From: Phaeosaccion multiseriatum
Taxonomy: Eukaryota; Protista; Ochrophyta, other classes
Reading direction: 5' to 3'
DNA: 64,000 nucleotides
Assembly (NCBI GenBank): GCA_965112735.1
Contig: OZ218959.1
Span: 2,604,001 to 2,668,000 of the forward strand
Translations under genes and position numbers: made by a program
Shown: positions 6,601-62,471 of the stretch, piece by piece
Layout of the letters: each line of letters starts with the position of its first letter
Numbering within the stretch: position 1 is the stretch's first letter
The notes under the pieces: model-generated
Told to the model about the DNA's origin: nothing
The model's database searches: none
What the model saw: only the letters and a program-made list of their open reading frames with translations

Positions 6601-9600
6601 GACTGACTGACTGACTGACTGACTGACTGACTGACTGACTGACTGACTGACTGACTGACTGACTGACTGACTGACTGACTGACTGACTGACTGACTGACT
6701 GACTGACTGACTGACTGACTGACTGACTGACTGACTGACTGACTGACTGACTGACTGACTGACTGACTGACTGACTGACTGACTGACTGACTGACTGACT
6801 GACTGACTGACTGACTGACTGACTGACTGACTGACTGACTGAGTAACTGACTGACTGACTGACTGACTGTCTGACTGACTGTCTGACGAATGAATCAGTG
6901 GGTGGGTGGGTGGGTGGGTGGGAGTGGATCGGTGTGTGAGTGCGTGAGTGCGCATGAGCATGTGTAGTGCGGGGACATGCGAGGTATGCCACTGAGTGGG
7001 TGCGTGAGGGCATAAACGAGGGGCCCACCAACGCTGATAGGTTGTACCCCACATGGATGCACACGCATGCAGACACAACCTTATCCTATCTTCAAACCGC
7101 AACCCTTCGTGGGCGGCTGTATCACTCACTGCTGTATCACCAACCTCTGCTGCCGCTGGTGGTGGTGGTGGTGGTGCTGCTGCTGCTACCTCCCTTGTCC
7201 CAGACATCCTCTTTACCTCTGCTGGGAATGACACTGCCAGCACCACCGATACTGTCACAGACAGTACTGACACCACAATCCGTCGAAGAAAGAGAAGGCT
7301 GCAGGACGAAGGACAGACGAACGAGAGAGAGGAGGAGGACGAGGATGACAACGTTGCTGTCTTTACAGACCCCGGTGTGGGGTGGATTGAGAACCTCGGT
7401 ATCGATGACGAGGAGGACGAGGCAGTCGCGGACGCTGCTGCTGTAGGGACAGCCGTTGCCGCTGCTGCAGCTGCGGCCGTCGCCGGAGCGGTTGGCGGTG
7501 CGGTCGGAGGGGCAGTCGGTGGGGGTGCAGGAGGGGGAGCAGGAGGGGGCGCAGGAGGGGGGTCCGGATCTGGAGGGAACAGCCCAACTTCTTCCGCGGG
7601 TGGCGAAGGTGGATCGGGGGGAGGCGGCGGAAACTCTGCGCCCACGGACTCGAGTAGCAGAGGAGGAACGGCGGGTATGGCCATCCTGTAAGTGAGGGAG
7701 AGAGGCAGGGCAAGGCAAGGCAAGGCAAGGCAAGGCAAGGCAAGGCAAGGGCAAGGGCAAGGGAGGGAAGGAGTTAGGCTTTGCGTTGCTCAGGGTATTG
7801 AAACTGCGTTTTCCCTGTAACTACGTTGCCCCCCCTTTCTGCCCTTTGTTCCTTCGCTCCAACCTTGCTCCACAGTCGTGTATGTTTCGACTCTCGACTT
7901 TTGCTTCCCTCATTTCGCTTTGTTCGTTGATTAAGATGGCTTCCCATCCTTCTCTTTACGTTGCGCACTTTCTTCTGAGCGTTCTTTGCCTCCTCTCTCG
8001 AACCTTCGATCTTCTTCCTCCTTTCCTTCATTCATTCATTCCTTCCTTCCTTGCTTGCTTCCTTCCTTCCTTCCTTCCTTCCTTCCTCCATTCCTTCCTT
8101 CCTTCCTCCCTCCCTCCCTCCCTCCCTCCCTTCCTTCCTCCCTTCCTTTCTACCATCCTTCCTTCCTTCCTCCGTCCCTTCCATTCTTCCTTTCTTCCTT
8201 CCTAATCTGTCTCCCCCTCCCCTCTCCCCGTCTCACCCCTGCCTGTTCTCCCAACCCCCTCTTTCTTGCCCTCCCTCTCTCTCCCACCCCATCTCTCCCC
8301 CGGATGGGCCATGGTGGTATAGAATGATTGGGCAAATCCAGTTCCTGTCGTTGCTGGGCAAAGTATCGGAGGGTGTGGATGACGCGTTTACGGCCTTTGC
8401 AGACTCCCTGGCCTTCCTTAACTTATGGATAACGGTGAGCGCCTAGCCCATTTAAGTCAGCGATGATGTTGCGCTATTCCTCAGTGCACGGCATAGAGTA
8501 TACAATCTGACATTCGTCCCTCCCTCCCTCCCTCCCTCCCCCCCCTCTCCGTACTCCCTGCCCTCCCTCCTGGCAGCCCGAATTCCCCATGCCTTGTTCT
8601 GACGTCAACGACCGCAACCGAGCCGCCATTAAACAGTTTGTGGGGAACACAAGCCTGTGGCTCGGCGGCGGCATTTGCATCTTCATCATTCACCTGGGCA
8701 TCATCTCTTGGTACGAGACCAAGAAGACCGCCCGTAACCGCCTGCTGGTGATGGCGGGTCAGGGTCAGCTGGAGTGGGGCGCGGAACCGTCGAGGAGCGT
8801 GACGGAGACGGACTCAAAGAATGCTCTGAGAACGAATGACGCTTTTTGGCTGTATGTGCCGCATGTGGAGCTTATGGTGAGGCGAGTGGGCGAGGGGGAG
8901 AGAGGGGGAGACGGAGAGACGGGGGGAGGGGGGGGAGGAGGGGAGGAGGGAAGATTGAACTGCGAATAGCGTTTCGTTTCTCAGGAGTGGGAGCGCCGAC
9001 GCATACCCACGCTCCGCTGGCACGCACGCACGCACTCGTTTCCACCCTCATCTCTCCCCGTCTGCCGTCCCCCCTCCCTCCCTCCTTCTCTGCATCCCTC
9101 CCTCCCTCCCTCCCTCTCTCCCCTTCCTCTCTCCCTCCCCCCCTCCCTCCCTACCTCCCTCCCTCCCCCCCTCCCCCCCCCCTACCTAACTCCATACCCG
9201 CAACTATAGTGGCTGCTGTTCTGCTATGAAGGAGCAGTCACCTCCCAAGCGCAGGCCATGGGGTGCGGTTGTGTCCCCATCCAAGGCCTCGCCTTTGTCT
9301 GTTTCATGCTCTTCCCCTTCACGCTCTTCCTTTACGCCGTCGTCGGAGTGAAACGGAGCTTCTTCTCGACGAGCCCCCCACTCACCTTCGAAGTACGTCA
9401 GGGTAGCGTGCGGGCCATCAAGGATACGAAACTAAGTCGAGATTGTCGACGTTCTCCTCCTCCTCCTCCTCCTCCTCCTCCTCCTCCTCCTCCTCCTCCT
9501 CCTCCTCCTCCTCCTCCTCCTCCTCCTCCTCCTCCTCCTCCTCCTCCTCCTCCTCCTCCTCCTCCTCCTCCTCCTCCTCCTCCTCCTCCTCCTCCTCCTC

Positions 9601-59900: not shown

Positions 59901-62471
59901 GCACCACCGCCGCCGTCACCAGGCCTGGCTCAGCAGTTGGTGGTACAACAGCAGTTGGTGATACAGCACCGCATGATGGGGCAGGGGCGGCTGCTGCCCC
60001 TCCTGCCAAGAAGTGTATTGCCTCCTTCCCCGCTTACTTTGCGGTGCTGCGCATCTGTCTGGAGGAGGCGAATGGAGACGTTGCCCTACGGGTCATGGAC
60101 GCGCTACTCTCAGAGGTGCGTGTGCGTGGGTGCGTGAGTGCGTGCGTGTGAGTGTGGATGCGTGCGTGTGGGTGTGGGTGGGTGTTGGTGTGTGCGTGCG
60201 GAGGAAAGGGTTTTTTGCTTGCTTGCTCTTACCACCAACTGTACTGTTGCTGCTGCTTCTCCCCCTGCCTGCCGCTGCTACTAAATGCTCATGCTAATTA
60301 ATTGTTCTCTGTCTTGCATCCGCGAACAAACCCACTGCCTACCCGGCTGCAGGGAACCGACCCTCCCCAAGAGGCCTATGACATGACCATCAAGACGCTG
60401 AGCAAGGCGGGGAGGTGGGAGGAGGCAAAGGCTCTTCACGTCAACCACACCAAGCTCTTCCAACAGCATGGTACTCGGCCTGAGGTGGAGAATAGCACTG
60501 ATGAGAGCGCTCAGGAGAGGAAGGAGGACAGCACTCAGGCCAAGCTCGAGGCCAGCCCTGAGACTCTGACCAGGCACCCTAAGATGAAGGATGGGTATCA
60601 GGCTCCTCAGGCTCAGGTGCAGGCTCATCAGCAGGCGGGCACACAGACTCAGGCGAAGAAGATGGAGCTTAGCACTCACACGCGGAGCACCCCTCCACAC
60701 CAGCAGCGGCAGCAACAACGGCAGGGCCAGCAGCAGGGCCAGCAGGAGGACCAGCAGCTGCAGCGGCGGCGGCTCGACGGTTACGTTTTGCTCCTGAAAC
60801 AGGCAGCGGGGTCCAGGGACGCGCTGCGGCTGCTCGGCGACATGAGGGAGCATGGAGGGGTGGAGCCGGATGCGCTGTGCATCAACATTGCGCTCTCCAA
60901 GTGTGTGGCGGATCGGGCCCATGTGAGTGTGGTTGGGAGTGATTGGCGGGTGGTCGGTGCTCGTTGGGGAGGAGAGGTGTGGGCGCGGAGATTGGTTTCT
61001 GTGCACTGAGCATGTTGCTCTCTCTCTCTCTCTCTCTCTCTCTCTCTCTCTCTCTCTCTTCCCTCTCTCCCTCTGCCTCTCCCTCGCTGGCTCGGGTCAT
61101 GCGTACTTGTGTGTCCCCCCGGTCGGGGACTCCCCTTTCCACACACATATACACACACTAACACGCACACACACACACACAGTACAAAATGCAGAAGTTG
61201 TACAGCGGCATGAAGCACCGAGGCGTCTCCCCCACGAGCGAGACATTCAGCAACATGATCTACAGCGCCTGTCTACAGCACAAGCTCGAAGAGGCACTGG
61301 CCTACCTCACTCAGGCCCGGCAAGAGCACGGTCTGAGGCTTGATTACTTCGCGTACGCGCCCTTGGCTAGGGGTCTGTCCAAGACGAGGCGGTTTCAAGA
61401 GTGTGCGGATCTCATTCCCCGTATGCTTGAGGACGAGTGTGATTTGTATCACGATACGTGTACGCAGTTGCTGCAGGCGGCGGGGAGGTGAGAAGAGGGG
61501 GTGGGGGTGGGGGTGGGAGGGAAGGAGGGAGGAAGGGAGGGAGAAGGGAGGGAGGGAGGGAGAAGGGCGGTTGGAGAGATACAGGAGATGACAGAGAGGG
61601 CACATCTAACAGGATGGATTTGCGCGCTCGCACTCAACTGAAAACTATTCTTCGCCATCACTCACGCGCACACACACACATACATTCTCACAAACGTACA
61701 CGCACACACACATACACACGCGTACACGCAGGGTGGGTGCTGGGGGCAGCGCCATGGCCCTCTATCGACGCTACCAAAGTATCACCAACAGCAACAGCAG
61801 CCGCAAGCATACGGACATGAGGGGCAAGCAGGGCAGGAGGAATATGGGCAAGAAGCAGGAGCCCATGCGGTCCAAACTGTACCTCTTCACGGTCATGGCA
61901 GCGCGAAAAAGCGCAATGTGGAAGGAAGTGCTCGAAGTGGAACAGGCTTGTCGCACGCGGGAGTGGGCCGCGGAGAGGGCAAGGCAGAAGCAGGAGGAGG
62001 GGCAGGGGGGGGAGGGGGGGGGGGTGTGGGAGTGGCCCGTGGGCGGAGGTGGTATGAACGGACCGGCGGCTTTGGACATGAGACAGGCATGTATGGACGC
62101 TCATCTTGAGGTAAGAGGGAGGGAGGAGAGGGGGAGACAAGGGCGACAGGAGGAGAGATCAAAAGAAGACAGCCAGAGTTGTCTTTCCCTTGTTTCTTCT
62201 ACTTCTTCTTCTTCTTCTTCTTCTTCTTCTTCTTCTTCTTCTTCTTCTTCCTTCTTCTTCTTCTTCTTCTTAAATGCGGTGCCCTGCTTTGCTTCCTCTT
62301 CCCCCTTACCTTACACCCCAGCTTGGAAATCTCGAGGAGCATCGACGCATCAAGGCCGAGCTCACCGCCATCCGACGGCGCCAACAGATGATGAAGGAGG
62401 CACGAGCACAGCAGGTCAAGGAGGAGGCCAGAATAGGGCGGGCGAAGGAAGAGGCACAGAAGGCTAGATAG
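53920..62471 (+). CDS. Multi-exon pentatricopeptide-repeat (PPR) protein, probably organelle-targeted
   Basis: About 15 phase-compatible exons. Motifs: PDWYNVTLQACSK; GVKPSLLSYLHALEAC; YSRAMMACGTGGDLPSALTLLEEM; ALLRRMKERDLTP; VFAHMKSHGVAKNTRCF; RGVEMDRVSYNSAMRVL; GVEPDALCINIALSKC; RGVSPTSETFSNMIYSAC. The start codon (53920 or 53968) is uncertain. Confidence 0.85.

Follow-up and report, generated by a model that had tools for sequence, protein, structure and literature searches.

Occurrence of a repeated word in the window

We analyzed a 64,000-nucleotide stretch of the genome of the ochrophyte Phaeosaccion multiseriatum (GenBank assembly GCA_965112735.1, contig OZ218959.1, positions 2,604,001 to 2,668,000 of the forward strand; hereafter the window, with positions counted from its first letter), in which a single short word, the 10-mer GTATCACCAA, recurs through unrelated genes. 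These genes include a surface-protein open reading frame (ORF), an FHA-region ORF, an Abhydrolase_2 (thioesterase-type) exon, a PPR gene and, on the minus strand, a kinesin-3 gene with a motor domain (49586-52000), a small exon (49389-49231) and a coiled-coil ORF of 1,827 codons (43696-49179). The word proved to be real DNA that is present genome-wide between unrelated flanks.

First, we examined the abundance of the word in the window. The 12 exact occurrences of GTATCACCAA claimed in the initial annotation were all found at their listed places, whereas only 0.03 were expected from dinucleotide-preserving shuffles (none of 100 shuffles reached 12). Markov models of orders 1-5 gave an expectation of 0.04-0.32 per window, which is already inflated by the motif because these models were trained on the window itself. 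The longer 17-mer GCTGTATCACCAACTGC was exact at each of the five sites previously reported (24729, 35807, 45468, 49315 and 59951) and was found with one or two mismatches at seven further sites (0 expected), and the 13-mer CTGTATCACCAAC with up to two mismatches occurred at 23 sites (1.0 expected). With decayed copies included, the window holds approximately 18 copies, which are listed below by the position of the 17-nt unit and the strand on which it reads.

7116-7132, plus strand: decayed copy GCTGTATCACTCACTGC; first unit of a pair spaced by 15 nt
7131-7147, plus strand: exact 10-mer core; reads TAVSPTSA in the surface-protein ORF (7041-7688, plus strand)
11033-11049, plus strand: exact core; probable intron, about 25 nt upstream of an acceptor-like site formed by a pyrimidine tract and CAG
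16562-16578, minus strand: copy with one mismatch, GTATCGCCAA; within a long CAG/CTG run (5 and 4 units)
24729-24745, plus strand: exact 17-mer; CTG run in the FHA-region ORF (23997-25385, plus strand), reads AAVSPTAA in an Ala run
29527-29543, plus strand: decayed copy GCTGCATTACCAACTGC
35807-35823, minus strand: exact 17-mer; reads AAVSPTAA in a variable loop of the Abhydrolase_2 (thioesterase-type) exon, which is on the minus strand
37533-37549, minus strand: exact 10-mer core; probably intergenic, no left CTG (ATG ... CGG), left flank repeats TATCA
42891-42907, plus strand: copy with one mismatch, CTGTGTCACCAAC; downstream of a CTG/TTG run
44370-44386, plus strand: copy within the stalk of kinesin-3, a minus-strand gene; reads QELVIQRQ
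45468-45484, plus strand: exact 17-mer; kinesin stalk, reads QQLVIQQQ; site of a pile-up of contigs from several hundred other genomic places
45591-45607, plus strand: exact 13-mer; kinesin stalk, reads ERLVIQSQ
47778-47794, plus strand: exact 10-mer; kinesin stalk, reads EQLVIREA
49315-49331, plus strand: exact 17-mer; small kinesin exon (49389-49231, minus strand), LVIQ/LVIR reading
59933-59949, minus strand: variant copy GTACCACCAA; second unit of a pair spaced by 18 nt, reads SAVGGTTA in a low-complexity insert of the PPR gene
59951-59967, minus strand: exact 17-mer; reads TAVGDTAP in the same insert of the PPR gene
60226-60242, plus strand: probable decayed copy TTACCACCAACTG of the GTACCACCAA-type variant
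61776-61792, plus strand: exact 10-mer; reads YQSITNSN in the PPR gene; the sole copy with a CAG-type flank (CAGCAACAGCAG) on the TATCACCAA strand

The GTATCACCAA word ranked first in a k-mer census of the window from which low-complexity words had been removed, and no second word of like behavior was found in this census. The recurrent words CCTCCCTGCCTC, AGAGAGAATGAG and ACACACACACCT were considered as similar motifs and rejected, being low-complexity sequence or splice-junction coincidences. A link to the intron 10-mer GGATGGCAGT / ACTGCCATCC was also rejected, as it occurs at chance frequency in the window and its similarity to the motif is not convincing; ACTGCCATCC lies at 49435-49444 in a kinesin intron, approximately 55 nt upstream of the acceptor.

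Structure and polarity of the unit

A position profile of 17 copies revealed that the unit has the form (CTG)1-3-TATCACCAA-(CTG)1-3, a conserved block of about 27 nt that fades into unrelated sequence on both sides. Its invariant core is G-TATCACCAA-C, the preceding G being present in 12 of the 12 exact copies and the following C in 11 of them. On the TATCACCAA strand the flanking triplets were CTG and never CAG in 16 of 17 copies (the exception is 61776-61792), and this polarity indicates that core and flank behave as one oriented unit. The word had been described as usually interrupting a (CAG)n run, which held only in part: about one third of the copies lie in true runs with at least two triplets on each side, but about half have just one perfect CTG per side. 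Among the 12 exact copies, a perfect CTG is found on both sides in five and on one side in most of the others, and these triplets are indistinguishable from the tract itself. In the window, TATCACCAA was the sole complex interruption recurring within CTGCTG...CTGCTG, the others being single-codon point variants (such as CCG, TTG and CGG).

The length of the unit is constant, in that the inserted part is always 9 nt. Copies grade from perfect to one or two mismatches, mostly transitions, and local pairs were found 15 nt apart (7116/7131) and 18 nt apart (59933/59951); the latter had been noted as a tandem pair with a single mismatch, and the pair does exist, but its second unit carries two mismatches. 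The sequence shared by any two copies does not exceed about 20-45 nt. When the 200-nt flanks were compared all against all by BLAST, no longer repeat was detected around the motif, save for composition effects within the kinesin gene, and the possibility raised in the initial annotation that all copies lie inside a longer known repeat was therefore not borne out. Half-motif scans of the window found no convincing split motif or occupied site. Since GTATCACCAAC differs from its reverse complement GTTGGTGATAC, the word has no dyad symmetry; neither the 9-mer nor the 17-mer has inverted-repeat symmetry, and an element body is lacking. No Rfam family or tRNA that could serve as a source was found in the window.

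The CTG strand was predicted to fold into a mismatched hairpin with G-C and T-A closure and a 7-nt loop, ATCACCA (-3.5 to -9.3 kcal/mol; z -0.3 to -2.5). The z-scores of -1.5 to -2.5 obtained in two of three contexts represent a weak signal, and the CAG strand folded no better than shuffled sequences.

Relationship to genes and reading frames

The word was located mainly in genes: 10 of the 12 exact copies fall in probable coding exons, and of the other two, judging from the surrounding sequence, the copy at 11033 is probably intronic and that at 37533 probably intergenic. This exonic majority is in keeping with the observation that triplets of the CAG class are coding here, with abundant non-coding microsatellites belonging to other types. 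The six frames of the word read AVSPT, LYHQL, CITNC, AVGDT, QLVIQ and SW-stop, and four of the five open frames are in use. In every exonic copy the frame agrees with the phase of the neighboring codons, which are CAG (Gln) or GCN (Ala). There is no transcript-strand bias, the word being sense in approximately four genes and antisense in approximately four.

The translations given in the initial annotation were all recovered, that is, LVIQ or LVIR five times in the kinesin, AVSPT in the surface protein, the FHA protein and the thioesterase, and VGDT and SITN in the PPR gene. Each of the five kinesin readings adjoins Gln codons. In the PPR gene, the pair lies in a low-complexity insert between PPR helices and reads SAVGGTTAVGDTAP, and the copy at 61776 accounts for SITN. 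In the Abhydrolase_2 exon, the motif-coded residues stand just past the part matched by Pfam. Taken together, the variety of frames, the use of both strands, the probable non-coding copies and the rule of flank phase uphold the earlier proposal of a DNA-level feature that proteins merely tolerate. Such a distribution is expected of an event in the DNA that is tied to CWG triplets and subject to no filter except retention of an open frame.

The named relatives closest to the kinesin motor were stramenopile algae (Chrysoparadoxa, 62%; Phaeothamnion, 58%). No homologue of the stalk (about 1,800 residues) was detected in a search of 5.8 billion proteins, and the 82-residue esterase (Abhydrolase_2) exon had no match in the PDB or in a library of 1.8 billion proteins. 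The stalk also contains a 63-nt repeat of 3.1 copies (47447-47640).

Genome-wide distribution

To assess the word beyond the assembly, contigs of four public sequencing runs were aligned to 43830-49000, a region with four copies; three of these runs came from one sample, and the fourth from another sample and another study. The run from the independent sample differed from the window by two single-nucleotide polymorphisms in 5 kb, and no indel or base change was observed at the four copies in any of the four runs. In the 173-nt bin that contains the perfect extended copy (45463-45494), the summed contig depth rose to 15,663 against about 100 in the neighboring sequence in run X1, and to 3,271 against 16.5 in the independent run X5. 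Dividing the excess by the local depth and by the approximately 32 nt shared by foreign contigs gave an estimate of about 400-1,100 further genomic places, which is an order of magnitude only, as summed contig depth is not a copy number. The parts of these contigs that extend past the unit agree with each other only at about 0.5 on either side, which indicates that the flanks are unrelated. Scaling the three 21-mer copies per 64 kb to a genome of about 30 Mb led to the same order as the depth estimate, although this genome size is guessed from a low-coverage run whose contigs total 34 Mb (a size of about 25-35 Mb is probable). The contig pile-up thus supported both the genome-wide spread of the word and its presence in independent data, which had been proposed as tests of the motif. 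At 45463-45494, the short-read contigs end precisely at the unit in each of the four runs and form chimeric joints between copies. The word is a practical hazard for short-read or de Bruijn-graph assembly of this genome.

Outside this genome, the word was at chance level or absent in the collections searched. No copy was found in about 40 kb of stramenopile contigs (15 kb of Chrysoparadoxa and 25 kb of a Logan organism), a result of little weight as both organisms are distant. A viral origin was considered and rejected, since the 34 matches of the 17-mer in IMG/VR were all single and mostly represented one conserved locus, apparently a gene, of low-GC viral contigs, the rest being at chance level. 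Similarly, the 19-mer gave 20 single-copy, unrelated matches in JGI metagenomes, again at chance level and with no multi-copy contig that would point to environmental relatives, and a prokaryotic or REP-like source was not supported by 102 single GTDB matches of the 17-mer, compared with about 70 expected by chance in a rough calculation. In the papers searched, the literal word appeared only in unrelated primer lists, and keyword searches found no description of it.

Comparison with known short repeats

We classed the unit as a variant of the broad kind known as short interspersed repeats. With respect to more specific systems, it lacks at least one tested defining feature of each of the highly iterated palindrome HIP1, the repetitive extragenic palindromic (REP) sequences, transposons with terminal inverted repeats (TIRs) and truncated long interspersed nuclear elements (LINEs).

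REP sequences and REPINs are bacterial, extragenic and clearly palindromic units of about 20-40 nt, present in hundreds of copies and mobilized by REP-associated tyrosine transposases (RAYTs; HUH transposases). The unit described here resembles them in being very short, multi-copy and non-coding, with unrelated flanks, a family of both intact and decayed members and possibly a degree of hairpin formation on one of the strands. However, it is mostly exonic, its stem relies on mismatched CTG·CTG pairing only, and no RAYT-like enzyme is linked to it. The DNA uptake sequences (DUS) and uptake signal sequences (USS) of Neisseria and Haemophilus, as well as the cyanobacterial HIP1, are prokaryotic recognition or repair-linked words, HIP1 being palindromic. 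DUS and USS belong to naturally competent hosts with a receptor for the word; the present host, a eukaryotic alga, is not known to have an uptake system. The initial annotation drew an analogy with these words, and it was correct in so far as a short word is over-represented genome-wide on both strands and is tolerated inside genes in several frames; indeed, the over-representation typical of DUS and USS was observed here. The analogy is nevertheless superficial, because the present word is eukaryotic, non-palindromic, mostly exonic and bound in fixed polarity to a trinucleotide tract with CTG flanks. Such a non-palindromic, exonic and polarity-bound word points to a copying process rather than to a selected recognition word.

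Human coding CAG tracts carry stabilizing interruptions, such as CAT in ATXN1 and CAA in HTT. These are likewise frame-keeping, non-CAG interruptions of a coding tract, and the likeness suggests that the unit might have a side-effect on tract stability. In contrast, the human interruptions are single-codon and private to one locus, whereas here one 9-nt word is common to hundreds of loci.

Certain R1-clade non-long-terminal-repeat (non-LTR) retrotransposons are specific to microsatellites and, reportedly (Kojima and Fujiwara), target (AC)n, (TC)n and (TAA)n. They share with the present unit an insertion of fixed polarity into a simple repeat, and in their case the repeat tail directs insertion by pairing with the target. 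They differ in being 5'-truncated and of variable length with a shared 3' untranslated region, whereas the insertion here is always the same 9 nt; no longer copies sharing a 3' region were found in the window or at loose contig ends. Among DNA transposons, the NuwaI group of PIF/Harbinger-like (PHIS) elements generates 5'-CWG-3' target duplications and encodes a Myb/SANT DNA-binding protein (PMC4482050). The CWG target is the triplet that flanks the 9-mer on both sides, but the unit has no TIRs, element body or random orientation, and its 9-mer is asymmetric. Finally, the genome of Ustilago maydis contains dispersed 10-bp repeats that have been suggested to be transposon footprints (PMC4081816). 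In both cases a eukaryotic genome is peppered with a very short, identical, non-coding repeat attributed to a past process at the DNA level, although the Ustilago repeats are reported to lie between genes at former transposon sites, whereas the copies here are mostly in exons and CWG tracts.

Origin and spread of the repeat

Whatever its present role, the word requires a copying process of some kind, because a word of at least 11 bases (11-12 occurrences against 0.01-0.3 expected per 64 kb) cannot arise about a thousand times by point mutation. The explanation that we favor, and to which we give roughly even credence, takes the motif for an ultra-short interspersed repeat that has passed between CWG tracts through templated repair guided by homology. 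According to this model, the unit would multiply at the DNA level, its core being transferred along with its flank between CAG/CTG (CWG) tracts. When such a tract breaks or slips, its triplets would anneal to a second locus, or to a transcript, in which the 9-mer is already present; the 9-mer would then be copied across, and re-annealing through the triplets on the far side would lengthen the tract by exactly 9 nt. This could proceed by ectopic conversion, synthesis-dependent strand annealing or RNA-templated repair. Spread by this means should be self-reinforcing, in that more copies would make it likelier for the next template to carry the 9-mer. We infer both the gain of copies as 9-nt insertions and the repair route.

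Several observations are accommodated together by homology-guided copying: the polarity, the constant length, the coupling to the flank phase and the unrelated outer flanks. Persistence in exons would follow from the mostly coding nature of CWG tracts (poly-Gln and poly-Ala), from the frame being kept by 9 nt and from the lack of a stop codon in five of the six frames. In addition, the range from perfect to decayed copies and the local pairs are as expected of a repeat family whose members continue to arise and decay.

Some points weigh against this explanation. We saw neither an empty site nor a presence/absence polymorphism, nor any orthologue without the 9 nt, and the two samples were identical at the four copies compared. 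We know of no other case in which a single fixed templated insertion has recurred about a thousand times. On one side, several copies have just a single imperfect triplet, so that the homology available to guide copying is scant, and an intact core beside decayed flanks could reflect selection on the core. The direct examination covered one 64-kb window and one contig pile-up.

If spread by tract-to-tract copying is correct, interspersed repeats could multiply without a transposase of their own, termini or an RNA intermediate, and at a size far below that of the smallest known eukaryotic mobile elements. It would also mean that LVI, VSP and VGD have been written into hundreds of unrelated proteins, generating proteome-wide low-complexity variation, and that about a thousand loci form a natural system for the repair and stability of CAG/CTG, the repeat class of human expansion diseases. 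The word could serve as a lineage marker.

More tentatively, the unit may represent a novel class of micro-elements in eukaryotes, which would be self-propagating, transposase-free, 9-27 bp long, non-coding and without termini, and would spread in CAG/CTG tracts through hijacked homology-guided repair or a dedicated enzyme recognizing hairpins or tracts, adding three amino acids to hundreds of proteins. Such elements, if real, would be a eukaryotic counterpart of bacterial REPs located inside exons and might stabilize coding triplet repeats.

Alternatively, the copies might be relics of a mobile element targeting CWG, either as scars of cut-and-paste excision (CWG, 9 nt, CWG) or as extremely 5'-truncated 3' ends of non-LTR or Penelope-like elements whose RNA, ending in ...TTGGTGATA(CAG)n, primed on CAG tracts. 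The arrangement CTG-9 nt-CTG does resemble a remnant between target duplications, with a perfect CWG on both sides in five of the 12 exact copies; the NuwaI transposons of the PHIS superfamily are an existing example of elements that duplicate a CWG target and have a Myb/SANT protein (PMC4482050), and the dispersed repeats of U. maydis have been interpreted as footprints (PMC4081816). Fixed polarity would also be expected from a retroelement tail priming on the tract. However, a TIR element inserting into CWG, which is reverse-palindromic, would be expected in random orientation, whereas the observed polarity was 16:1, and the 9-mer does not show the inverted-repeat symmetry of two joined termini. 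Truncated retroelements should have ragged 5' ends rather than a constant length of 9 nt, and neither a split motif nor any extension past the unit common to several copies was detected, either in the window or at loose contig ends. Thus, we regard a mobile-element origin as unlikely.

A role as a functional binding site maintained by selection, with copying providing only the raw material, appears rather improbable. Possible factors, with a role in chromatin, replication or recombination, include a Myb-type protein, a domesticated transposase and a multi-zinc-finger protein. CAACTG and CACCAAC, both within the word, appear to resemble Myb-type sites. The core is perfect beside decayed flanking triplets in some copies (for example, 44371, 45592 and 47779), the word occurs in either orientation relative to genes, and its density is about 1 per 5 kb, all of which would suit a binding site. 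On the other hand, 10 of the 12 exact copies are in probable coding exons instead of promoters or intergenic DNA, decayed copies are common, and the small set of other stramenopile contigs that was searched lacked the word; a binding site has no need of so strict a coupling to CTG flanks and codon phase, which is what copying would give. Among the candidate roles offered initially, the footprint of a (CAG)n-targeting process comes closest to the anatomy of the unit, while factor binding alone cannot explain the origin of about a thousand identical words. A binding role is compatible with homology-guided copying and does not exclude it.

A signal acting in the protein or mRNA, such as a peptide motif, a splicing enhancer or an RNA structure, could be suggested by the exonic location of most copies and by the weak hairpin of the CTG strand (z -1.5 to -2.5), but is highly improbable and practically ruled out by the varied frames and the use of both strands: the readings differ across genes (AVSPT, AVGDT, QLVIQ and SITN), copies are antisense in about as many genes (approximately four) as they are sense and also lie in a probable intron and in probable intergenic DNA, and the CAG strand shows no folding beyond that of shuffles. 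A sequencing, adapter or assembly artefact is hardly credible, given that the contigs of four runs, including one from a different sample and study, carry the copies unchanged, that the copies are embedded in ORFs and keep them open, and that decayed variants exist.

Other features of the window

Two arrays of related 31-nt tandem repeats (37625-37700 and 38555-38654), about 900 nt apart, adjoin the motif copy at 37533. Tandem Repeats Finder returned 171 rows in the 64 kb, and the non-coding DNA consists largely of simple repeats of non-CAG types. Long, near-pure microsatellites were (CAT)158 at 4136-4610, (TGAC)107 at 6460-6887, (GGA)208 at 18651-19273, (CTA)123 at 28670-29037, (GAGG)89 at 41878-42233 and (GGAG)120 at 51424-51901. 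An (AC)n/(GT)n run ending in AGGT was observed at 5215, 12735, 14779, 30284 and 32125 (minus-strand reading ...ACACACACACCT); these runs look like exon|GTGTGTGT... donors, and introns here seem often to begin with a GT dinucleotide repeat. A 33-nt tandem repeat at 62951-63400 is open on both strands, with peptide units such as GSRGTLTGVCV and CCPHKPLLMSL. Five homopolymers of G or C with at least 10 bases end in GCA (15194, 17221, 21682, 42621 and 49414), which is probably a compositional effect.

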